Below are positions 754 to 17,876 of a stretch of DNA of 64,000 nucleotides, in pieces (the first letter of the stretch is position 1; each line of letters starts with the position of its first letter). Where the stretch lies: sequence record NC_070952.1. One strand, written 5' to 3'. The notes under the pieces were generated by a model. It was not told the DNA's origin, did no database searches, and worked only from the letters and a program-made list of their open reading frames with translations. A program made the translations under genes and the position numbers.

Positions 754-2850
754 ATGGATAAGCACAATCAGATTAAACCGAATACGGCAGGTGTCGCTAT
801 CGGTATGAACACTAACAGAGCAACCAACTCTTCCTCACGCTTGTATATGCTCGGGAAGAACCAAGGTAAAGCGGCTGTTATCCACGGTACCACAAACCGT
901 AAGTATATTTCTGGTGATGAACAAGAGTATACGAAAGGCGCCCGTAAAGTAGAAACAGAGTCTGATGTAGAAGTTGAAGAGATTCTGTTTGTTCGAGATA
1001 TCGTTAATGAAAAGGAACCTACTCAGTGGGGTTCTCACTTCGTTATTGTAAAGGATCTCGAAACCGGACTTTACGACGTAATCGAATTGTCTAAGTTTCA
1101 CGCTCAAAATATGGATCTTGGCTTTGAGTTTAAATACGACAAAGACTTGCTCCGCTCGATTCATAAAGGTGCACGATTCCGTAAAGGGACGGTATTTGCA
1201 ACGTCTGCTCGTATCACCGAAAGTAATGAGTGGGTACCTGGTGCCGAAACCAAAGTAGCTGCAATGTCCCACGTTTATACCGAAGAGGATGCCGTTGTTA
1301 TCTTTGAGCATTATGCAAAGAAGATCGGCGTTACTTTCAAACGCAGTCATGACTTCCAGTGGAATGAGGATGAGTATATTCCGTTGAACCTTTATGGGAC
1401 AATCGATCATCCACAACCTTTCCCACTGTCTGGTGAAACTGTGCGTGCTGACGGTATCGTTATGGGTTTTCGTCGTAAGGATGCGGATTCAGCGATGGCC
1501 GGTCTTACCAAGAAAGCATTGATGGAACCGGATGACATTTATGATATCTTATTCCACAGCAGTGCTAACTGTGTGGTTGCCGATATTGAAGTTTCCACCG
1601 AGCGTTATAAAAACGTCTCGAACAACAAACGTGCTGAGAAACGCAGTCAACCCCATACGGCTATTCTGGAACGTATTGAAGAAGCGCAGAATGCTTTTGC
1701 TAACTCCGTTGTTAAATGGTTTAAGGAAAAGCAGAAAGTATATAAAGACAAGAAAGTTCCAATCTCTCGTGCACTGTGGAACTTGATCTGCTTTAACGGT
1801 ATGGGGGATATCACCCGTGACTTCAGTACACCGAACAGTCAGGGTCGTTATAACAAGGTTAAACGTAAAACCGGTAATATCCAATTGAAAGATTGGCGTA
1901 TCCGTATTCACCTTCGTGAAGATGTAGAAGGGAAAACGCGATTCAAGAACACCGGGATGGACGGTAACAAATCGATCATCATGAAGGTTCTGCCTTCACA
2001 CATGGCGCCGGTTGATGATCACGGTAACGTTGCTGATATGATCGTGGGTAACACCCCGGGTTATCGTCGTCAGATTTATAACTCATTCATCGAGCTTGAT
2101 GTTAACTTCGTGAACATTCATTTGTATCCGAAGATTGTCAAAGCGTACAATGAAAAGGATTATGATCTGGCTTGGAAGATCGCTTATGATTTCTATGAGA
2201 CGGTTTCTCCAGAACACGGTGCGATCATGGATACGTTTACCGATGAAATGCGAATGAACCATCTGAAGTGGATCATGGCAGATGAAAATGAGTTCGCGTC
2301 TCTGGGTAATAACACCGATGATATTCAAGGTGTGAAAATCGTTGAACGTATTGTTGACCGTTATCCTGAAATTCAACCAACTCCGGTAACCTTCGTTAAT
2401 GAATGGGGTGAAACCAAACGTACCCGTCACCCAATTGTGATCAGTAGTGTTTACTATATCATGTTGGATAAGTTCGGTGATGATATCTCTTGTCAGTCTA
2501 CCCCGAAACTGAATATCTTTGGTCTGCCAACCTCGTTGTCTAAGCACGAAAGAGCACGTAACTTTTATCGTGCTACGCTTAACCGAAATGTGGGCGAAAC
2601 CGAAGGACGTCTGTTCATTAATCAGAAAGGCGGTGGTGCTGCAACTCGAATGCTAGCTTGGGCAAACTCCGCTGAACTGCTGGAGATCTCAATTGAACGT
2701 TTGATCCGTGCAGAAAACCCGTTCCTGATTCCAGAACTGATCAAACCGGGTGAAGAGAAAAAGAACCACTCTCTTCAAGTGATCGACAATATGTTCTCTG
2801 ATTTTGGCTTAGTATTGAGGAAAGAGCGTGAAGACGATAAAACTGCGTGA
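754..2850 (+). CDS. Non-virion RNA polymerase beta subunit, C-terminal half (phiKZ gp71-73-like)
   Basis: KTRFKNTGMDGNKSII matches beta GDK-x-x-GRHGNKG; NRNVGETEGRLF matches RFGEME-x-x-AL; adjacent to a beta' fragment. ATG 754 chosen over GTG 742 because of SD AGAGGT. Confidence 0.9.
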   Translation: MDKHNQIKPNTAGVAIGMNTNRATNSSSRLYMLGKNQGKAAVIHGTTNRKYISGDEQEYTKGARKVETESDVEVEEILFVRDIVNEKEPTQWGSHFVIVKDLETGLYDVIELSKFHAQNMDLGFEFKYDKDLLRSIHKGARFRKGTVFATSARITESNEWVPGAETKVAAMSHVYTEEDAVVIFEHYAKKIGVTFKRSHDFQWNEDEYIPLNLYGTIDHPQPFPLSGETVRADGIVMGFRRKDADSAMAGLTKKALMEPDDIYDILFHSSANCVVADIEVSTERYKNVSNNKRAEKRSQPHTAILERIEEAQNAFANSVVKWFKEKQKVYKDKKVPISRALWNLICFNGMGDITRDFSTPNSQGRYNKVKRKTGNIQLKDWRIRIHLREDVEGKTRFKNTGMDGNKSIIMKVLPSHMAPVDDHGNVADMIVGNTPGYRRQIYNSFIELDVNFVNIHLYPKIVKAYNEKDYDLAWKIAYDFYETVSPEHGAIMDTFTDEMRMNHLKWIMADENEFASLGNNTDDIQGVKIVERIVDRYPEIQPTPVTFVNEWGETKRTRHPIVISSVYYIMLDKFGDDISCQSTPKLNIFGLPTSLSKHERARNFYRATLNRNVGETEGRLFINQKGGGAATRMLAWANSAELLEISIERLIRAENPFLIPELIKPGEEKKNHSLQVIDNMFSDFGLVLRKEREDDKTA

Positions 2851-4849
2851 GTTTGCAAATCTATCCTGTTTAGCAATGTTGCAGTTTACAGAGCGTCGAA
2901 TTAAGATCGAAGTTCTGGATGATGTCGGTGATAAACAAATTACCGATACCTGGATGCTGGGACTGAGTTGGTTCAGTCTGATTGTCCATCGTCATTATAA
3001 TGATGAACCGTATCACATTAATGAGCTGGCGCTGTTGAAAGAGAAAGACGGACGCCAATCCTTCATCGATGATGATACCCTGAAGAAACCAATCGATAAC
3101 TTCCTTGAGCGACTGATGCCCAAGTATGACGATCCGGTCTTCTATGATTTCATCAAACAACTTATCTTTACCTGGCATAACCAGTGTCATAACTATCTGG
3201 CGATCAAAGGCGAAACAGGTGTGGTCTCTGCGCGCGCAGTAGACATTGTACACATCTATCGAAACCCTAAGATCATGGATCTGCGAGAGCGTGTACACAG
3301 CCGTAAAACCAACATGGCCGATGCACACAAAGAGTTCGAACAGATTATGATGACAGAGAAAGACCTGGATAAGCTGGTCTTCACTTTGTTGTATCGTACT
3401 CGTTCGGTTAACTCAACGCAGTCTTTCCAGTTGATTGTATCGCGTGGAGACGTGTTCGATTTGAACAACGTTATTCTGCCGAATACCATCATGACCAGTT
3501 ATGCTGATGGCATTACCAATCTGGCAGATTCTCTGGGTGACTCCAAAGGTGCGGGCTTCTCTCTGATCAGTAACGGTTCAGCACTTCAGGATTCCGAGTG
3601 GTTCCATAAAAAGATCCACAACGTTTCTCAAGTCGTGCAAGGTATTCGTTATCAAACAGACTGTGGGTCTACGGTGGGTCCGGTATTGAAGATCATCAGT
3701 ACCGAGTTTAAGAAGTCGTTAGTGGGACGTTGGACGATTAATGATGATGGTACCAATACCTTACTGACTTATGAAGAAGTGAAGAAGTTGGAGACAGGGA
3801 ACTCTATCCGGATTCGTGACATCGCTTGGTGTCATCATGCTAAAGCCGGTAAACCTTGTTCCAGATGTTTCGGTAAGATGGAATCTGCTATTCCGTATAA
3901 TCCTTTTACACTGAAAGCAGGGGTTCCAGGTCTGTTCTATGGTTCCACGTTTGCTGAACCTATTGGTCAGTCAATCTTGAAAACCAAACACCGTATCGGG
4001 TCAGCAACTTCCGTCGGGTTTAAAGTAGAACGTGCCGATCTTCCGTATATCACTACCGATGAAACCGGTGACTTCATTTACTTCCATAAAGATATCCTGA
4101 ACGACGTCTCTGATCCATATATCATCTTGGATAAAGAAACGCAGCAGGACTTCTCTGACTTCCAATTCATGGACAGCCTGGATGATCTGGATGCTACTCG
4201 TTTTCGTACCTATGAAGCGATCAAACTTAAAGTCAGCATTGTTAACCCAATGTTCGATGATAAGAAAGCAACCTACTTCCCTGTACTGACCACCACCATT
4301 GCTTCTCGTGATGCCCGAATGACCAAAACGTTCATTCAGTATCTGCTGGGCAAACCGATGGAAGAAGAAGGTCGTAACTTTAAGATCTCGTTGAAAGACT
4401 ATGACTTTAAAGAACCGGCATTTGAACTTCCACAGGTGAACGAAGATTTGGATGCGTATCGTAAACGTGTTGAGAGTTTCCTGAAGTTCCCTCATGTTAA
4501 CCGTCGCTGGGATGTGAAAGTGACACCTGAAATTCATGGTGAAACAATGATCGCATTCTGGAAAGTGGTTGATGAGAAATATAAGGAAGCCAACATTGTT
4601 ATGCATTCTATTTTCTTGTGGGCATGTATGGCACGCGATCCTGAGAATCTGGACTTTGGTATTCCGGTTGGCGAAGAACCGCGTAACTTCATCAGTCTTC
4701 ATGACGCAGTGCTGAACCGTGGTCTGGGTAACACCTTACTGTATGGTTGGCAGGCAAGTGCGCTGTTGGGTCACCCAAATAACATGCGCATTAAAAACCG
4801 TCAAGGCGGTGCACTGGAAGCATTCATGCATCCAATCGCTCGCGATTAA
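2828..4849 (+). CDS. Non-virion RNA polymerase beta' subunit, C-terminal half (phiKZ gp74-like)
   Basis: Zn ligands DCGST...WCHHAKAGKPCSRCFG; trigger-loop-like FAEPIGQSILKTKH; overlaps the beta gene. Confidence 0.9.
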   Translation: MKTIKLREFANLSCLAMLQFTERRIKIEVLDDVGDKQITDTWMLGLSWFSLIVHRHYNDEPYHINELALLKEKDGRQSFIDDDTLKKPIDNFLERLMPKYDDPVFYDFIKQLIFTWHNQCHNYLAIKGETGVVSARAVDIVHIYRNPKIMDLRERVHSRKTNMADAHKEFEQIMMTEKDLDKLVFTLLYRTRSVNSTQSFQLIVSRGDVFDLNNVILPNTIMTSYADGITNLADSLGDSKGAGFSLISNGSALQDSEWFHKKIHNVSQVVQGIRYQTDCGSTVGPVLKIISTEFKKSLVGRWTINDDGTNTLLTYEEVKKLETGNSIRIRDIAWCHHAKAGKPCSRCFGKMESAIPYNPFTLKAGVPGLFYGSTFAEPIGQSILKTKHRIGSATSVGFKVERADLPYITTDETGDFIYFHKDILNDVSDPYIILDKETQQDFSDFQFMDSLDDLDATRFRTYEAIKLKVSIVNPMFDDKKATYFPVLTTTIASRDARMTKTFIQYLLGKPMEEEGRNFKISLKDYDFKEPAFELPQVNEDLDAYRKRVESFLKFPHVNRRWDVKVTPEIHGETMIAFWKVVDEKYKEANIVMHSIFLWACMARDPENLDFGIPVGEEPRNFISLHDAVLNRGLGNTLLYGWQASALLGHPNNMRIKNRQGGALEAFMHPIARD

Positions 4850-5682: not shown

Positions 5683-5982
5683 ATGAAAAGTAACATTGAT
5701 TTAAAGTTCTTTGATCAGTGTAAAAATTATTTTGTCTATCACCATAAAAATAACCTTCCTTTTACCCGAGGGTTTGGTGAAGGACGACCTTTGCGTTCAC
5801 AGAGTGAATATCTTGAATATCGTTATATTGATCTTAATGATGAAACTTTTGACGCGATAAAAGAAAAGGTAAAGACTCATCTGGAAAAAGAAGACCCTAA
5901 CCTCACTTATGGTGTTTTTCGAGTGAGCGTGGAAAAGTTAACTAAAGGGTATGAAATTAATGTAGGGTACTACTACATCTAA
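5683..5982 (+). CDS. Hypothetical protein
   Basis: ATG 5683 with GGAG SD; 99 aa. Confidence 0.65.
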   Translation: MKSNIDLKFFDQCKNYFVYHHKNNLPFTRGFGEGRPLRSQSEYLEYRYIDLNDETFDAIKEKVKTHLEKEDPNLTYGVFRVSVEKLTKGYEINVGYYYI

Positions 5983-6006
5983 ATCCCACAGTAATTTAAT
6001 TTCAAA

Positions 6007-6025
6007 CATATATCATTATCGTGTA
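6007..6025 (+). promoter_or_regulatory. Putative phage early promoter motif
   Basis: CATATATCATTATCGTGTA; 17/19 identical to the copy at 54223. Confidence 0.6.
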
Positions 6026-6047
6026 ACTAACCACACAGGTAATAACT

Positions 6048-6410
6048 ATGCCGGAACAAACTGCCAGTCCTGATATGATTCTCACCATTAAGAACGGCGA
6101 GTCATATGAGATGGGTTGTGAGTTGAAAAAGAAAACCCTACTCAGGCTTTCTGAAATCAATGTGGAAAATGAAGAGAGTATCTTCTTTCCAGAAGGTAAA
6201 AAATTTGTTCACAGTTTCGACCTGAGTAAAGGTGACAATGAACAGATCTTTGCTTTCACTAACCGTAAAGAACGCGAAGAAGGTTATGACCCTGTTTCTG
6301 TTCGCGGTAAGGCTTTCTTAAACGAAGGTATTATCAAGATCGAAGGTGAAGGGTTTGTCTCCATTGTACTTCATGTCTATGAGTACAGTGACACCAAAGA
6401 TAAAGAGTAA
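6048..6410 (+). CDS. Hypothetical beta-rich protein, paralog 1 of 3
   Basis: Motifs FPEGKKFVHSFDLSK and EGIIKIEGEGF shared with the next two ORFs. Confidence 0.75.
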   Translation: MPEQTASPDMILTIKNGESYEMGCELKKKTLLRLSEINVENEESIFFPEGKKFVHSFDLSKGDNEQIFAFTNRKEREEGYDPVSVRGKAFLNEGIIKIEGEGFVSIVLHVYEYSDTKDKE

Positions 6411-6810
6411 TCCCATGGGTATTCCACGCCATAAGCTACTGGGTGAACCAACTGTCTACGCCGTCCCTAAAAAGAAACCGTTCACCATTACAGATGAACT
6501 GGATGAAAACTGCGTCTTTGTATTAGAAGGAGCGTCGTTGATTCCTTATGACGAGACAGTGCACAAGAACATCTGTCTTGCCGTATTCCCACAGAAAGAA
6601 TTTGTACCTTCTTTTGATAAATCAAAAGAAAAGACTACCCTCATTAATATGTGGGCCAGTCGCAATCCTGCTGAAGATGCTAAGATCAAGATCACGGCTG
6701 AAATTAATATCAAAACGGGTGACGTTAAAGTTAACGGATCCGGGTTTGAATTTGTTATTATTCACATGTACCGTTTAAATAAGGATAGTAAAGATGTCAG
6801 TAAAGATTGA
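6373..6810 (+). CDS. Hypothetical beta-rich protein, paralog 2 of 3 (start uncertain)
   Basis: Motifs FPQKEFVPSFDKSK and TGDVKVNGSGF. Confidence 0.7.
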   Translation: MSMSTVTPKIKSNPMGIPRHKLLGEPTVYAVPKKKPFTITDELDENCVFVLEGASLIPYDETVHKNICLAVFPQKEFVPSFDKSKEKTTLINMWASRNPAEDAKIKITAEINIKTGDVKVNGSGFEFVIIHMYRLNKDSKDVSKD

Positions 6811-7210
6811 GAATGTTGAGTTAGTATTGAAAGATGCACCAGAAGTTTCTATTATCAAACTTCCTTCTACGCTGGTAAATAAAGCGTTTAGTTTTTTCCT
6901 GACTGAAATCAAAGGTGGTGATAAAGTTTTGGTTGAGTTTGACAAACCAAAACAAATGGTGCCGTCTTTTGAAAAAGCCAAATCGGACTCGATTCTGATT
7001 TTGCAATACAGTAATGCCGAGAAAGATGTTCCGGCTACCTTCTCCCTGGTACTGGAACTTGATCTCAACAAAGGTGAAGTTAAGATGACCGGTCACGGTT
7101 TCACTTCTGCTTCCTTGTCTGTTGAAAGCGAAGAGATACCAACCCAGCTGGAACCCGAAGCCCACCTGACCGAATCTGATGCCACACCAGGTGAAGACGC
7201 GGGAAAGTAG
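6794..7210 (+). CDS. Hypothetical beta-rich protein, paralog 3 of 3
   Basis: Motifs FDKPKQMVPSFEKAK and KGEVKMTGHGF; AAGGA SD. Confidence 0.75.
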   Translation: MSVKIENVELVLKDAPEVSIIKLPSTLVNKAFSFFLTEIKGGDKVLVEFDKPKQMVPSFEKAKSDSILILQYSNAEKDVPATFSLVLELDLNKGEVKMTGHGFTSASLSVESEEIPTQLEPEAHLTESDATPGEDAGK

Positions 7211-7357
7211 TATCCAGTTCATCTAAATAACTAAAGGGAAAAGGATTTCCCATAAAAGGAATTAGCATTTAAAAGTACTCCGGTCCGAATCAGATAGTCA
7301 AGTATCCTTTGGACGCCCAATTCACTGGGTTTCAGTACATAAAGAGGTTTGCGTCAG

Positions 7358-10382: not shown

Positions 10383-10934
10383 ATGACCGTTATCGTTCAT
10401 GAAAATAAAAAGTTAAGTAGTCTTCCTACTTTAATGGAGACACAGGATATCATAAATGAGTTATCGATGGGTACAGATAAACTTTCCAAAGAGGAGTTTA
10501 TTCGGATTGCTTTAGAGAAATACCCTAAGTTCGATGCCTGGTCTCCGCTGGTCTATTATCGGACTGATGGTACTGTCTTAGAAACCGATCTTATTCTTGT
10601 GTCTCTACGTGGCGCTATTGCATACAAAATGGGTGGCGATCTTCACATCAACTATGGTGATCTGGAAAGTGGTTCTCCACAGGTCTCGGTCAACATCTTG
10701 GGTGATCAACATACACTGCAACTGGGTCGCGCTGTAGCGTCTACCTTCTTAACCGTGCCTGACATCTATAAGGGTATCAAAGAAGCAGATCTACAGGTTA
10801 TCCATTTGGACGGTCAATCTCATCAGTGTCATATCCTGAACCTGGAATGGAAACTGAACAAACCTGAAGCGGATACCGATCTGGTTGAGAAAACCGTAAA
10901 GGTACTTAACGCCGATCTTCCAACCGAAGAGTAA
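10383..10934 (+). CDS. NUMOD4/HNH-like protein with degenerate active site
   Basis: AWSPL...LILVSLRGAI resembles NUMOD4 (W-x-P...Y-x-VS-x-x-G-x-V); GRAVASTFLTVP...QVIHLDGQSHQCHILNLEW resembles HRLVA-x-AF-x-PNP...V-x-HIDG-x-x-x-NN-x-x-x-NLEW; AAGGAG SD. Confidence 0.65.
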   Translation: MTVIVHENKKLSSLPTLMETQDIINELSMGTDKLSKEEFIRIALEKYPKFDAWSPLVYYRTDGTVLETDLILVSLRGAIAYKMGGDLHINYGDLESGSPQVSVNILGDQHTLQLGRAVASTFLTVPDIYKGIKEADLQVIHLDGQSHQCHILNLEWKLNKPEADTDLVEKTVKVLNADLPTEE

Positions 10935-13206: not shown

Positions 13207-13914
13207 ATGACCAAAGCAAAGAGTACACAAGTTCGTGCTTCCAAACGTAATGCCCGTGCTAAAGCCAAGAAAGTTTCAGCTAACAAAGGTCGCACCACAC
13301 CTACACAGCTGAATAAAAAGAGTTTCCGTAAATCACTTCTTGGTGAACGTTACGACTTCGATCAAGTTCTGAACAATGCGGTCCGCGATATTAACAACCG
13401 CAAAGAAGTTGCTGGTGAGTTCACTTCCGTTAATGATGTTCTTGATGGATTGAAGAAAACCACCGCCGAAGTATTTAAACTTTATTCATATATTACATTT
13501 GTTCAGGCACTGGCCAAAGAAGGTCTGATCGACCATCAGCTGGCGATTGACATTAAAGCAATCTCCATCAGCCTGATCAGTATCGACAAACGTATTCAGA
13601 ACGTCAGCAAACTGATTGAAGCTGATGAAGAAGAAACTGTCTTCACCGAAGCCCTGGATATTAGCACCACACTTCAGAACTATTCTGAAGAGCTGTACGC
13701 TGAAGTAGTTCGCAGCGAAGAGCATGCTTTGACAATTGAAGAGAGTCTCTCTCGCTTGGCCAAAGATGTGGAAGGTATTGACGATGTTAATCAACAACGC
13801 TACCAAGTTCTCCAACGCTTCGCCTATCAGTATCTCACAGAAGTTAAAGATGAGATTGATGGCAAGGTTGCTGCAGATACTCGAACAGAGACTGCGGAAC
13901 CAGTTACAGAATAA
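13207..13914 (+). CDS. Hypothetical helical protein with a basic N-terminus
   Basis: GAGGAG SD; MTKAKSTQVRASKRNARAKAKK N-terminus, acidic helical body. Confidence 0.75.
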   Translation: MTKAKSTQVRASKRNARAKAKKVSANKGRTTPTQLNKKSFRKSLLGERYDFDQVLNNAVRDINNRKEVAGEFTSVNDVLDGLKKTTAEVFKLYSYITFVQALAKEGLIDHQLAIDIKAISISLISIDKRIQNVSKLIEADEEETVFTEALDISTTLQNYSEELYAEVVRSEEHALTIEESLSRLAKDVEGIDDVNQQRYQVLQRFAYQYLTEVKDEIDGKVAADTRTETAEPVTE

Positions 13915-13940: not shown

Positions 13941-15572
13941 ATGTCCGAAGAAAAGACTGAACTTGAGAAAGGAATTCAAAAGGAAGTTGCAATGAACGTA
14001 TTGCGTGCTTCTGTGATTGGTAAGCACGATGAAAGTTTTGATCCCGCTATCCTTCCTATTTTTGTTGGTGCTCTGGGTGAAACCCACCGTTCGATCTATA
14101 AGACAGCGGTGACGTACACGGCATTACAACGTGCACTGTCTGATGAAGAGGTTGGGCGCGGTTCTCCAGAAGGTCGTGATTCAAAAGCGCTGAAACTGTC
14201 TTTTGACGAACTGGTCAATGAGCATTTCCCAGATATAGAGGAAGATGAGTTGGTCGCAATGTTGATCAACTACATGTCCTTTATCTATAAAGGTGTTGAC
14301 CGTTTGTTACTGCGTGATGAGAACGCCGAAATTATCCTGCGTGAGGGATTGTCAAACACTGTAGCCGGTAAAGACAATACCCGTGTGGGAACAATCTCCC
14401 CAGTCAAACCAAGTAATGATAAAACCCTGTCGCCGCGTGACCGTATGCGTCGTAACTTGCGTGGTGGTCGTGGTGAACCTGATACGTTCAATATCATCCT
14501 GCTCAACTCTCTGATTTTCCTACGTGTAGAGATCCCTAGTGCACCAGACTTGATCCGATTGATCAACACTATTGCCACTCGTCTTCAGACCTATGGCGAG
14601 CGTTACAATGTCTCTGCGCTGCATCTGGAACGTGCTGGTATCAGTGAGATCCTGATTGACTTTGTGCTGGACCGTTTGAAGTACCACAGTGTGAAAGATG
14701 TGTCTGATCACTATGAACTCAAACAGTACATCTTGCAGAATGACCTTAACCCGATTGTCATGGGTCTGCTCTGCACAACTGCACCGAAGGGTGTGTCGTT
14801 CCGCATGTACTGCGTCGCGAACAAATGTCAACACAGTGAAGTGCAAATTGTTGACCCTACCACGATGGTTCTGGATGTTGAAGACGACATGCCGGAAGAA
14901 CGCCGTGCACTTCTTTACGATATCGTAAATAAAGGGCGTAAACTTTCCCGTGAAGAACTCTGGGCTAACCGCCCGGTCTATAAAGACCAAGACGGTAAAG
15001 AGCTGGACGATTCTATTCCTATCGAAAACATTGGACGTTATAAAATCCAGATTCCTTATCTGGACGAATACTTCTCAACCTTCCGGGCCATGTGTGACCG
15101 CATCAACCCAGACCTGCGTCAGTTGGCAATGGACTTCCCGAACGTGGAAGATTTCAAACGCAAACGTAAAGACTACATGTCGGGTATTCGCGGCAGTGAA
15201 TATATTCAATGGATCGGTTCTGTTGAGTATGATCCTGAAGCCGGTACTGAAGGTGAAGTCGAAATCATCAAACGTGAAGAAGATCCTCGCAGCTTTGAAC
15301 AAGGCCTGCTGGATAACTTCAGTGATGATGAAGAATTGTATATGGATGTATTGCAGAAGCTTATTCGTTTTATCCCGCGTATGACCTATACTTATGTGGG
15401 GATTCCAAACGACGCGTGCCCGGCTTGTAATAAATCTGCAGATTCGGTTGATCGTGAACTGACCAAAGGGTTTACCCCCATTGATCCGATCATGAATTTT
15501 TTCGACCGTACCCGAATGATGATTGGTATGAGAGAGACCGCGGCGAGTTCTATCGAGGAAAATCTTTCTTAG
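13941..15572 (+). CDS. T4 gp26-like baseplate hub / tail assembly chaperone-like Zn-finger protein
   Basis: NDLNPIVMGLLCTTAPKGVSFRMYCVANKCQHSEVQIVDP resembles gp26-like D-x-x-x-I...C-x-x-C; second CPAC; P-x-x-x-x-NFF near the C-terminus. Confidence 0.6.
   Translation: MSEEKTELEKGIQKEVAMNVLRASVIGKHDESFDPAILPIFVGALGETHRSIYKTAVTYTALQRALSDEEVGRGSPEGRDSKALKLSFDELVNEHFPDIEEDELVAMLINYMSFIYKGVDRLLLRDENAEIILREGLSNTVAGKDNTRVGTISPVKPSNDKTLSPRDRMRRNLRGGRGEPDTFNIILLNSLIFLRVEIPSAPDLIRLINTIATRLQTYGERYNVSALHLERAGISEILIDFVLDRLKYHSVKDVSDHYELKQYILQNDLNPIVMGLLCTTAPKGVSFRMYCVANKCQHSEVQIVDPTTMVLDVEDDMPEERRALLYDIVNKGRKLSREELWANRPVYKDQDGKELDDSIPIENIGRYKIQIPYLDEYFSTFRAMCDRINPDLRQLAMDFPNVEDFKRKRKDYMSGIRGSEYIQWIGSVEYDPEAGTEGEVEIIKREEDPRSFEQGLLDNFSDDEELYMDVLQKLIRFIPRMTYTYVGIPNDACPACNKSADSVDRELTKGFTPIDPIMNFFDRTRMMIGMRETAASSIEENLS
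15497..15503 (+). other. Candidate -1 ribosomal frameshift site T TTT TTC
   Basis: In-frame AAT TTT TTC; the -1 frame opens after TGA at 15482-15484 and runs without a stop into ORF 15599-16024. Confidence 0.65.
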
Positions 15573-15598
15573 CAGATGAGTCCGAACTTCCTAAGCAA

Positions 15599-16024
15599 AT
15601 GGTTGATCAAGCATTAAAATTGTTTATCGAGCATGCCAATGAAAAGGACGGACTCAAAAGAGCAATCATCAGCCGGAAGATTACCATGGTTATGCATGGT
15701 TGGGTGGGTCTGGAACAAAACGGAAACGCCCAGCTTAAGTTCAACCATCAGCGAAGAGATCTATTCCATCTCTGGTCTGCAAAGAACTTTGGGTACACCT
15801 TCGGGATACGGGAATACAATAAGTTCCTTTCATTAAAAGAGTACTTTGAGATGCCAATTGATCTCATGGACGATATTTTGGAAGGATACGGTCGTAGCAG
15901 AGAGGATCTGGCTAAGCAACAAAAGCATGCTGCTGATAGAGCAGCGTCGCTGGCAGCCTCTGGCAACGGCTTAAATAAGTCTGAAATGGCGGCACTTACT
16001 GCTGCTCAACGTGGAGATAAATGA
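15599..16024 (+). CDS. T4 gp51-like ORF; probably the C-terminal part of a -1 frameshift fusion (open from 15485)
   Basis: FLSLKEYFEMPIDLMDDILE...EDLAKQQ resembles gp51-like SL-x-E-x-x-x-M-x-P...; no recognisable SD before ATG 15599. Confidence 0.6.
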   Translation: MVDQALKLFIEHANEKDGLKRAIISRKITMVMHGWVGLEQNGNAQLKFNHQRRDLFHLWSAKNFGYTFGIREYNKFLSLKEYFEMPIDLMDDILEGYGRSREDLAKQQKHAADRAASLAASGNGLNKSEMAALTAAQRGDK

Positions 16025-16554
16025 TGGGCGATAATTTCAACCCACCGAAGATCGAAAAACGCAACAACGCAGTAGCCGAACAAACTACTGAAGCGCAAGA
16101 AACCAAAACCACCACTACGCGGGAAGTTAACAGTCCTGTCGATATTTACAAGAACGGAATTGATGAGTTCGTCAAGTTCCTGAAAGGTGAAATTGCAGGT
16201 GGTACTCTGGATGAACGTCGTGCGCAACAGAAGAAAGCGATTCAAACCTGTTGGGGTATGTTGGATCTGGATTACGCGCAGACTAAGGAATCGCTGGATT
16301 ACTTCCTGATCACTGTGGGTCAGAACCAGAACGCATTTGAGTGGAGCAATATTCTTGCCCCGTTGAATGCCCTGGAAGGTAAAATGTCCGCCTCTGAAAT
16401 TACGCGTTACAAACGTTTCATGGTGTTCATTACTCTGCTTTCCGAGTACGCCCGTAATCGTACTCAGTTTACCCAGATGTTTGACATGACCAAGTTTGAG
16501 GCAATGTTCCCAGCTAAGTCACGTGAAAATCTGCACAACTACGTGTATCGTTAA
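16021..16554 (+). CDS. Conserved hypothetical protein
   Basis: 177 aa, GGAG SD, overlaps the previous stop. Confidence 0.75.
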   Translation: MMGDNFNPPKIEKRNNAVAEQTTEAQETKTTTTREVNSPVDIYKNGIDEFVKFLKGEIAGGTLDERRAQQKKAIQTCWGMLDLDYAQTKESLDYFLITVGQNQNAFEWSNILAPLNALEGKMSASEITRYKRFMVFITLLSEYARNRTQFTQMFDMTKFEAMFPAKSRENLHNYVYR

Positions 16555-16567
16555 TTTACTGACGCCC

Positions 16568-16597
16568 CCTACCTTATCCTTCACGGGATAAGGTAGG
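16568..16597. terminator. YTAC-family hairpin
   Basis: CCTACCTTATCC-TTCACG-GGATAAGGTAGG; TATG and a long T-run about 8-25 nt downstream. Confidence 0.7.
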
Positions 16598-17109: not shown

Positions 17110-17838
17110 ATGAGTTTTTCTGATGTAGAGCACTTTGCCGAAATTATCTCTGGGTGTGAAGCAATCAACAGCGGTAATAACACTGCACCAGAAGCGCGCT
17201 ATGCGTTTGCGGTACTTAAACTCCATGCTCAAGACCTGGGTGTAGTTGCAGGTCAGGAAGGTTTCCTGGATAATGTTAAAGCCGGCGCTAAGAGTGTAAA
17301 AGAATGGGTGATTAGGATCATCAAAATTATTACAGATGCGCTCTATTTATTATTAGGTGGTCGCACCAAAGTCAAAGCCAAGATTGCTAAGTTCAAAAAG
17401 TCGGCTGTGTTTGACGTCTTTAAGAGTAAAGCAAAACAGTCCGCTGAGAAGATAGTTGTTCCTGGTCTTAAACAGGTGTTGGCAATTACTGATTCTATAA
17501 TTGAATCAGAGTATCAAGAGTTCCACCGTAAAGAGATTGAAGAAACCTCTACGGTAAGATCGATGTTTGTTGACAATAATGAGATCGAAAATAAAGTCGA
17601 AGCCCAAGTTAAAGAAGGGGAAAGTAACCCTTCCGAAAACACGCTGGATCTTGATGCTATCGCCTCATTAGTTAACAGATCTGTTAATAAATGTAAAGCG
17701 ATTTTAACGGATGCAATCAAAGACGAAGAAGTAAACCGGAAGTTGATTAAAAATATCAGCTCTGTCGCATCTAAGTATAATCGTATCCTAGAAATATTAA
17801 CAAAGATCGATAATCAATTATCAGAAGCTTTCGAATAA
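17110..17838 (+). CDS. Putative processed head protein
   Basis: SGCEA and AGQEGF protease-type motifs followed by amphipathic helix VKEWVIRIIKIITDALYLLLGG. Confidence 0.65.
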   Translation: MSFSDVEHFAEIISGCEAINSGNNTAPEARYAFAVLKLHAQDLGVVAGQEGFLDNVKAGAKSVKEWVIRIIKIITDALYLLLGGRTKVKAKIAKFKKSAVFDVFKSKAKQSAEKIVVPGLKQVLAITDSIIESEYQEFHRKEIEETSTVRSMFVDNNEIENKVEAQVKEGESNPSENTLDLDAIASLVNRSVNKCKAILTDAIKDEEVNRKLIKNISSVASKYNRILEILTKIDNQLSEAFE

Positions 17839-17876
17839 CATAATCTCCTACTTACCCTTGGGTAAGTAGGAGTATG
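17839..17876. terminator. YTAC-family hairpin with CATA/TATG flanks, convergent junction
   Basis: CATA-at-CTCCTACTTACCC-tt-GGGTAAGTAGGAG-TATG. Confidence 0.75.

Follow-up and report, generated by a model that had tools for sequence, protein, structure and literature searches.

A conserved, predicted -1 frameshift in a probable hub chaperone gene of phiKZ-like jumbo phages

The locus in Erwinia phage AH04

The analyzed window is a 64,000-nt stretch of the genome of Erwinia phage AH04 (NC_070952.1). It includes two adjacent genes on the + strand, AH04_95 (13941..15572; 543 aa; PHROG 4585) and AH04_96 (15599..16024; 141 aa; PHROG 19747, unknown function, predicted all-helical), both annotated as encoding hypothetical proteins. 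The two genes are flanked by conserved neighbors in the same orientation: upstream, AH04_94 (13207..13914, +; function unknown), which is syntenic in the annotated relatives that we examined and showed no family or PDB match, and downstream, AH04_97 (16024..16554, +; PHROG 14374, unknown), the start of which overlaps the stop codon of AH04_96 and is preceded by its own GGAG. A terminator-like hairpin of 13 bp (16568..16597, +) follows gene 97 and is the first such element on the + strand after gene 95, with no terminator-like site between 15572 and 15599, so that genes 95, 96 and 97 are probably transcribed together. The locus lies away from tail genes, among genes for a virion RNA polymerase subunit, a virion structural protein, DNA polymerase and helicase, and the same synteny holds in relatives.

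Near the end of AH04_95, the codons AAT TTT TTC place the heptamer T_TTT_TTC (15497..15503, +) in the X_XXY_YYZ phase of the zero frame. The -1 frame contains a TGA stop at 15482-15484 and is then open from 15485 to the stop at 16022-16024 (15485..16024, +; 179 codons), with no ATG, GTG or TTG before 15599. Thus, 521 zero-frame codons up to 15503 followed by 173 codons in the -1 frame would yield a product of about 694 aa. The region immediately after the heptamer (15504..15572, +) is a dual-coding overlap that comprises the last 22 sense codons and the stop of AH04_95 together with the first residues of the -1 extension, and the following 26 nt annotated as intergenic (15573..15598, +) are part of the -1 reading frame. 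The ATG at 15599 lacks a GGA-core Shine-Dalgarno (SD) sequence, whereas 10 of the 14 neighboring genes have one at 4-8 nt. All elements of the original prediction, namely, the slippery run, the -1 frame stop just before it, the open frame continuing into the second ORF, the absence of an SD and the size of the fusion, are present in the sequence, and the observation is confirmed.

Conservation of the slippery site and the -1 frame

A single open stretch of 38 codons would not exceed chance expectation. We compared 41 non-identical loci, including those of phiKZ, EL, OBP, SPN3US, Goslar, RSL2, a Bacillus jumbo phage and metagenome contigs, in which the identity of the large protein to that of AH04 drops to about 20%. 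Scans of IMG/VR and metagenomes returned few loci, and a broad alignment was too divergent to seed a further scan, so the census covers 41 loci rather than hundreds; tblastn finds the gene in 221 phage records, and the protein family has 737 representatives. An in-phase T_TTT_TTN is present in 38 of the 41 loci and a near-variant, G_TTT_TTY, in the other 3. In all 41 loci, the downstream ORF is in the -1 frame and is open from before the T-run, with a median of 179 codons, compared to 17 codons for the +1 frame across the same stop; one metagenome contig (L018) carries a single in-frame stop further down, inside the downstream ORF. The -1 frame opens only 6-189 nt before the heptamer, and the upstream gene ends 27-114 nt after it. 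The absence of the heptamer or the presence of -1 frame stops in relatives had been named in advance as observations that would refute the frameshift, and the hypothesis passed this test on the 41 loci.

Selection acts on the nucleotides of the site. The first Phe codon is TTT in 41 of 41 loci, and the preceding codon ends in T in 38 of 41, although it encodes 8 different amino acids. Part of the conservation of the site is, however, at the protein level because Phe-Phe is conserved also in the T4 gp26 family; in T4 gp26 itself, the homologous Phe-Phe is encoded by TTC TTT and is followed by an immediate stop in the -1 frame, so that a frameshift in T4 gene 26 is ruled out.

The stretch with no start codon after the stop of the upstream gene evolves like coding sequence in the -1 frame. 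The -1 read of 10 phages contains 20 invariant columns, 10 of which fall in the first 25 residues, upstream of any start codon. The overlap is the only part of the locus that blastn still detects in Aeromonas phages, its columns are near-invariant in a 20-sequence DNA alignment, and both frames include conserved residues. The gap equivalent to the 26 nt of AH04 is 17-237 nt long in relatives, with 218 nt between gp77 and gp76.4 in phiKZ, and contains no -1 frame stop in any locus. Substitutions in the gap are biased to the third codon position. In the closest pair, N1M2 and Sureiya, the 108-nt gap differs at -1 codon positions 1/2/3 by 2/3/17, and in two other pairs, the corresponding differences are 4/6/13 and 11/12/22. 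The position of the first start codon is not conserved, ranging from codon 35 to codon 68 of the -1 read in 12 phages.

No stimulatory element was identified. RNAalifold analysis of 18 sequences predicted 8 weak pairs, none of them compensatory, the downstream RNA of AH04 folds no better than shuffled sequences (z = +0.77), a search of Rfam gave no hit, and no upstream SD-like stimulator was seen. The efficiency of the shift could therefore be low, although not every known site of this type has such an element. The nucleotide conservation after the heptamer is explained by dual coding.

None of the 25 GenBank records whose feature tables we read shows a joined coding sequence, and several start the second ORF 40-68 codons too late. 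Our literature searches revealed no prior description of this frameshift, and the hits to "gp77", the name of the first gene in phiKZ, concern the gene numbering of other phages.

Relationships and inferred function of the products

The large protein is a probable distant relative of the T4 gp26/gp51 hub assembly chaperones (Pfam PF12322, named "gp26 family baseplate hub assembly chaperone" by NCBI; gp26 and gp51 are listed as hub assembly chaperones in PMC3004832), but the link is weak. AH04 gp95 itself has no Pfam hit. Among 89 distant family members, 4 gave hits to PF12322 below the gathering score (best E 1.1e-3; 19.2 bits against a cut-off of 24.5), and this is the only Pfam family matched by more than two of the 89; for comparison, T4 gp26 and gp51 score 216 and 178 bits, respectively. 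In a Foldseek search of BFVD, the AlphaFold model of gp95 matched a T4-like "Baseplate hub assembly protein" (E 4.5e-4), with further matches to the "Baseplate hub subunit" of SP-15 (E 8.3e-3) and to another T4-like hub assembly or hub subunit protein (E 2.5e-2), and TM of about 0.3-0.5 on the target. Comparison of one family profile to a gp26 alignment using hhalign gave E 4.9e-4 but a probability of only 32% over 63 columns, and another profile (A2) gave a probability of only 2.8%. The pattern of two Cys pairs and a Phe-Phe close to the C-terminus is shared: in the gp95 family, D268, C291, C296, C493 and C496 are invariant and F520 and F521 are at least 90% conserved, whereas in the gp26 family, C82, C84, C187 and C190 are invariant and F204 and F205 are at least 90% conserved. 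Sequence, profile and fold searches of the PDB with gp95, as well as profile searches with its neighbors, detected no relative with a solved structure. The label "ZipA-like cell division protein" that appears in the records of RisingSun, ZPAH34 and LAh10 has no Pfam or NCBIfam support and is rejected.

The part added in the -1 frame matches no known family. Searches of Pfam and NCBIfam and a profile search of the PDB gave no hits, its PHROGs have unknown function, and hhalign comparisons to T4 gp51 and gp26 gave probabilities of 0.2% and 4.5%, respectively; the AlphaFold model (pLDDT 52) is too poor for a fold search. The interpretation offered in the original prediction is partly supported. 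The programmed -1 shift joining the two ORFs, the erroneous split in standard annotation, the location away from tail genes and the lack of a previous description are supported; "gp26-like" for the first part is partly supported; "gp51-like" for the second part is not supported by these searches, and T4 gp26 and gp51 both match PF12322, so that it is the first protein that resembles both; and "G/GT-type" holds only as an analogy.

Under the most plausible scenario, to which we assign a probability of roughly 0.7, AH04_95 and AH04_96 are one recoded gene. In this view, most ribosomes read the zero frame to the stop at 15570-15572 and make the 543-aa protein of about 61 kDa, whereas a fraction slip one base back on T_TTT_TTC, with tRNA-Phe re-pairing on the U-run, and continue in the -1 frame to 16024. 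The resulting protein of about 694 aa would share the first 521 residues with the short form, the last 22 residues of which, a predicted terminal helix, would be replaced by a helical extension of about 173 aa. The downstream ORF, lacking a conserved start of its own, would be made mainly or only this way, and an RNA stimulator would not be needed, or at least none was found. The analysis directly demonstrates the signal, its phase, the open frame, the conservation of these features and the coding signature of the stretch without a start codon. By contrast, the existence of the long product, slippage by ribosomes rather than by the RNA polymerase, the ratio of the two products and their function are inferred from sequence comparison alone. 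Given that the shared body is a probable distant relative of the T4 hub assembly chaperones, the short and long forms probably act together as a fixed-ratio assembly chaperone pair for the tail hub. Binding to the tape measure and tube proteins and absence from the virion, as for a lambda-type chaperone, would be a further inference by analogy; phiKZ gp77 and OBP_093/094 carry no "structural" note in their records, while their neighbors do.

Transcriptional slippage is an unlikely but not excluded alternative, whereby the phage or host RNA polymerase stutters on the T-run and adds one U to a fraction of the transcripts, which then encode the same long form in a single frame. The T-runs are 7-9 long in 18 of 38 loci, homopolymers of that length are known slippage sites, and U7 is reported as under-represented in all three frames, with transcriptional slippage offered as a possible reason (PMC4066793). 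Moreover, these phages use their own unusual multisubunit RNA polymerases, the fidelity of which on such runs is not established, and no ribosomal stimulator was found. However, in 20 loci, AH04 among them, the run consists of only six Ts, which is short for efficient transcriptional slippage with known polymerases, yet is a canonical in-phase X_XXY_YYZ heptamer. Furthermore, the phase of the run relative to the zero frame is kept in all 41 loci, which is required for tandem tRNA slippage and irrelevant for the polymerase, although it is also tied to the conserved Phe-Phe.

Still less likely, the two ORFs could be separate genes, with the downstream protein initiated at the ATG at 15599, at a non-canonical start or by termination-reinitiation, and with the T-run and the open -1 frame being by-products of the conserved Phe-Phe and compact gene packing. 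An ATG is indeed present 27 nt after the stop in AH04, T4 gp26 retains Phe-Phe without a frameshift, gene callers and annotators treat the two as separate genes, the PHROG profiles of the small protein begin near the annotated starts, and in a few phages, for example, Miami, annotators placed a ribosome-binding site before the downstream ATG, so some independent initiation is possible. Against this possibility are the variable position of the first start codon, the conserved residues and coding signature upstream of every start, the -1 frame open back to the T-run in 41 of 41 loci while the +1 frame is not, the codon choice that keeps the run T-only and the absence of an SD at 15599. A sequencing artefact or pseudogene, in which a miscounted T in the homopolymer or a recent frameshift mutation would split a true single ORF, although homopolymers are classic sites of errors and mutations and contig L018 carries an in-frame stop, is all but ruled out by the same -1 relation in 41 independent loci, isolates and metagenomes from different laboratories and platforms, with T-runs of 5, 6, 7, 8 and 9, by the absence among the 41 of any locus with the two ORFs fused in one frame, and by the conservation of the zero-frame tail (R525, M526, I528, E539, L542 and S543, each at least 90% conserved).

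The phiKZ-like phages are heavily studied as models of the phage nucleus and as therapy candidates, and yet this gene pair is annotated as two hypothetical proteins in the records that we examined, often with the second ORF truncated by dozens of conserved residues. Conserved recoding in this syntenic gene would correct these annotations, add a protein of about 77 kDa to the proteome, extend the principle of frameshifted assembly chaperones to a non-homologous protein family in phage groups where we found none described and offer a testable idea about the poorly understood T4 hub chaperones. It would also represent a clean natural example of a U-run heptamer that seems to work without an RNA stimulator. 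More tentatively, all phiKZ-like (Chimalliviridae) and allied jumbo phages, including a Bacillus one, could make their gp26/gp51-type baseplate hub chaperone in two forms from one gene by an ancient, strictly conserved -1 frameshift (phiKZ gp77 joined to gp76.4), the long-missing counterpart, in giant contractile-tailed phages, of the G/GT frameshift. The separate gp26 and gp51 of T4 would then be the same short/long pair resolved by gene duplication, which would unify hub and tail-length chaperoning across myoviruses.

Comparison with known recoded and chaperone genes

The arrangement resembles lambda G/GT and the conserved -1 frameshift of tail assembly chaperones (Xu, Hendrix and Duda 2004; Levin et al. 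1993; summarized in PMC5009743) in that a short product and a C-terminally extended one, here inferred from sequence only, share the N-terminal body, the arrangement is conserved across highly divergent phages, and a role in assembly is likely. However, no homology was detected: there was no match to a tail assembly chaperone family in Pfam, PHROGs, NCBIfam or the PDB, and the best Foldseek hit to such a chaperone in BFVD has E 2.4. The shared body is 521 aa rather than about 100-140 aa, and the protein about four times larger; the gene is not located between the tube and tape-measure genes but among RNA polymerase and DNA polymerase genes; and the slippery sequence is a U-run, whereas lambda uses G_GGA_AAG. 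The E/E+E' genes of phage P2, in which a -1 shift occurs on a T-run, similarly combine a contractile-tailed phage, a T-rich slip site and an extended minor product, but the P2 genes are small and adjacent to the tape-measure gene, and no search here indicated homology.

T4 gp26 (208 aa) and gp51 (249 aa), a short and a longer member of one family, are probable distant homologs of the shared body and a possible two-gene counterpart of the short and long forms. In T4, however, there is no frameshift, and genes 26 and 51 are divergently transcribed separate genes next to the hub genes 25, 27, 28 and 29; the jumbo phage protein is more than twice as long, and its -1 extension does not resemble the gp51 tail. 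Finally, Escherichia coli dnaX (tau/gamma) employs a bacterial-type -1 shift on a homopolymeric X_XXY_YYZ heptamer to produce two proteins in a set ratio. The dnaX site has an upstream SD-like stimulator and a downstream hairpin, neither of which was found here, and the dnaX shift truncates the protein, whereas the shift proposed here would extend it by about 173 aa.

The slippery heptamer and its conservation

The region examined is 100% identical to Erwinia phage AH04 (MZ501267.1, genus Meadowvirus, 262.6 kb), with window position 13941 corresponding to position 75941 of the record. The two open reading frames (ORFs) in question, AH04_95 (13941-15572, 543 aa) and AH04_96 (15599-16024, 141 aa), are both annotated as hypothetical proteins and are drawn as separate genes. 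In the phase of gene 95, the sequence reads AAT TTT TTC, so that the heptamer T_TTT_TTC occupies positions 15497-15503. The -1 frame contains a TGA at 15482-15484 and is then open up to the stop at 16022-16024 (179 codons), with no ATG, GTG or TTG before 15599. A shift at the heptamer would yield a product of 521 + 173 = 694 residues, in agreement with the original prediction, and the observation on which that prediction was based is confirmed in full. The 21 nt preceding the ATG at 15599 contain no GGA-core Shine-Dalgarno sequence, whereas 10 of the 14 neighbouring genes have GGAG, AGGA or AAGGA at a distance of 4-8 nt. No terminator-like site separates the two ORFs, the first such site on the + strand being a 13-bp hairpin at 16568-16597, after gene 97. 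The start of gene 97 overlaps the stop of the -1 ORF (window 16013-16026), with ATGs at both 16021 and 16024 and the stop at 16022-16024. A GGAGA lies just upstream, so gene 97 has its own ribosome-binding site and need not depend on frameshifted ribosomes.

To determine whether this arrangement is more than a chance occurrence, we examined, as the original prediction required, whether relatives lack the heptamer or have stops in the -1 frame. Relatives were collected from GenBank phages by blastn and tblastn, and from IMG/VR and JGI metagenomes using protein-derived patterns that do not include the slip site. Altogether, 41 non-identical loci were scored, ranging from close relatives (77% protein identity) to phiKZ, EL, OBP, SPN3US, Goslar, RSL2, Ea35-70, 2050HW, LucasX, Halocynthia phage JM-2012 and Bacillus phage AgentSmith (about 20% identity). 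In all 41 loci, the next ORF is in the -1 frame, and this frame is open from a point before the T-run, namely, 6-189 nt before it where a full heptamer is present. The stop-to-stop -1 ORF across the stop of the first gene has a median length of 179 codons, compared with a median of 17 codons in the +1 frame; the two shortest -1 ORFs come from a contig that ends and a contig with one in-frame stop. One metagenome contig (L018, VFSW01219692.1) has one in-frame stop inside the downstream -1 ORF, with conserved sequence continuing after it, which could reflect a sequencing error, a defective copy or read-through.

An in-phase T_TTT_TTN is present in 38 of the 41 loci (20 TTTTTTC, 16 TTTTTTT and 2 TTTTTTA, with T-runs of 6-9), whereas the remaining three have G in place of the first T, namely, Noxifer with 5 T's and two IMG/VR contigs with 6 T's. 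The conservation is at the nucleotide level and not only at the protein level: the first Phe codon is TTT in 41 of 41 loci, and the preceding codon ends in T in 38 of 41 while encoding N, L, V, T, S, G, I or A. In phiKZ (positions 2093-4155 of locus L040, from AF399011.1), the same arrangement joins gp77 (533 aa) to the small re-annotated 80-codon ORF PHIKZ076.4, which lies 218 nt downstream of the gp77 stop. There, a T_TTT_TTT is located 36 nt before the gp77 stop, and the 218-nt "intergenic" stretch is open in the -1 frame.

Coding signature and possible mechanisms

The -1 frame shows a coding signature in the stretch where it has no start codon. An alignment of the -1 reads of ten phages, each taken in a single frame from the T-run on, contains 20 invariant columns, ten of which are within the first 25 residues, inside the overlap with the first gene, and well-aligned conserved positions continue through the annotated "intergenic" gaps. 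In N1M2, Sureiya, pEt-SU and Kc263, the annotated start is a Met that lies some 60 residues into this conserved region, and the first possible start codon falls anywhere between codon 35 and codon 68 of the -1 read. In the closest pair, N1M2 and Sureiya, the 108-nt gap differs at -1 codon positions 1/2/3 by 2/3/17, and two further pairs give 4/6/13 and 11/12/22. The zero-frame tail after the run is conserved as well, with six positions at 90% or more, so both products appear to be under selection. This dual coding explains why a block of about 55 nt around the heptamer is the only piece of the locus that blastn still detects in Aeromonas phages.

The signal is a canonical bacterial X_XXY_YYZ heptamer made of Phe codons. 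No stimulatory element was found: RNAalifold applied to 18 sequences predicts only 8 weak pairs with no compensatory change, the downstream AH04 RNA folds no better than shuffled sequences (z = +0.77), and a search of Rfam returned nothing. Because many relatives have 7-9 T's, the addition of one U through slippage of the RNA polymerase would give the same protein and cannot be excluded, although the six-T, in-phase form in AH04 and 19 other loci favours ribosomal slippage. A sequencing artefact is excluded by the 41 independent loci with runs of five different lengths.

Candidate affinities of the two parts and genomic context

The large protein, gp95, belongs to PHROG 4585 (unknown function) and has no match in Pfam, NCBIfam or PDB. 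A profile search identifies 737 representatives of this family, mostly of 480-600 aa. In 121 of these, D268, C291, C296, C493 and C496 are invariant and F520/F521 are nearly so, and 113 of the 121 have Phe-Phe within the last 60 residues, with a median of 14 residues after it. The two Cys pairs (residues 291-296 and 493-496; window about 14811-14828 and 15417-15428), which are invariant across these 121 representatives at 15-34% identity, probably form a four-Cys metal site that ties together the two halves of the fold. The AlphaFold model of gp95 (pLDDT 77) has no neighbour in PDB. In BFVD, after the jumbo-phage homologues, the model matches "Baseplate hub assembly protein, bacteriophage T4-like" (E 4.5e-4), "Baseplate hub subunit" of SP-15 (E 8e-3) and, insignificantly, a "T4 gp51-like" protein. 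PF12322 is the only Pfam family matched by more than two of 89 distant family members (4 hits, all sub-threshold).

In T4 (sequence L032, from NC_000866, positions 5803-7229), both gp26 and gp51 strongly match PF12322 over about 200 residues (E 8.8e-64 and 3.9e-52), so these two proteins are paralogues, with gp51 carrying an extra tail of about 48 aa; the two genes are divergently transcribed. NCBI names this family "gp26 family baseplate hub assembly chaperone", and Leiman et al. list both proteins as hub assembly chaperones (PMC3004832). An alignment of gp26 shows the same two Cys pairs and the Phe-Phe near the C-terminus. The hhalign comparison with the jumbo-phage family gives E 4.9e-4 but a probability of only 32%. 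We therefore consider gp95 a probable, but not proven, distant relative of this family. T4 itself has no frameshift: its Phe-Phe is encoded by TTC TTT, and the -1 frame stops at once. Several relatives in GenBank annotate the large protein as "putative ZipA-like cell division protein", and others as "baseplate hub" or "baseplate protein", but no family search supports the ZipA label.

The -1 extension matches only PHROGs of unknown function, namely, 19747 and 24181 and, in the phiKZ-like branch, 12109 and 7580. It has no hit in Pfam, NCBIfam or PDB, shows no similarity to gp51 or gp26, and is predicted, at low confidence, to be all-helical. The original description of this part as gp51-like is thus not supported.

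The synteny around the locus is conserved. A virion RNA-polymerase beta' subunit gene and a virion structural protein gene lie on the other strand and are followed by a gp94-like gene, the putatively recoded gene and a gp97-like gene. The neighbours have no recognisable function, and the locus is indeed located away from the tail genes. AH04_99 (17110-17838), between the gene cluster containing the proposed recoding site and the DNA polymerase gene, gives weak hits to phiKZ-like internal head proteins (PF12699, E 1.3e-4, below the cut-off; PHROG 5750). A perfect 12-bp hairpin at 17845-17872, between gene 99 (+) and the convergent DNA polymerase gene (-), scores as a terminator on both strands and is a likely bidirectional terminator. 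An HNH homing endonuclease gene (AH04_91, 10383-10934), next to the virion RNA-polymerase beta' subunit gene (AH04_92), has no counterpart at this position in the relatives retrieved and is possibly a mobile insertion.

Interpretation and relation to known frameshifted phage genes

The heptamer, its phase and the open -1 frame are thus observed directly in the sequence, and the frameshift hypothesis is strongly supported by comparison, whereas the production of the long protein remains an inference, given that no product has been seen. The functional part of the original prediction, a G/GT-type tail chaperone pair with gp26-like and gp51-like parts, is only partly supported, as an analogy and through the probable gp26/gp51 relationship of the first part alone. 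We found no prior description of this frameshift in full-text searches, within the limits of an incomplete collection of papers: a 2016 review of recoding does not mention phiKZ or jumbo phages, a 2026 preprint on the Goslar virion mentions neither a frameshift nor a chaperone, and none of the 25 GenBank records whose feature tables were read carries a joined CDS.

In this view, the arrangement would work like lambda G/GT and P2 E/E+E', where short and long forms result from a -1 shift near the 3' end of an assembly-chaperone gene. It is not, however, a member of those families, because there is no homology, the shared body is about four times larger, and the genomic position is different. The short gp26 and the longer gp51 of T4 may, by inference, represent a two-gene equivalent of the same arrangement.
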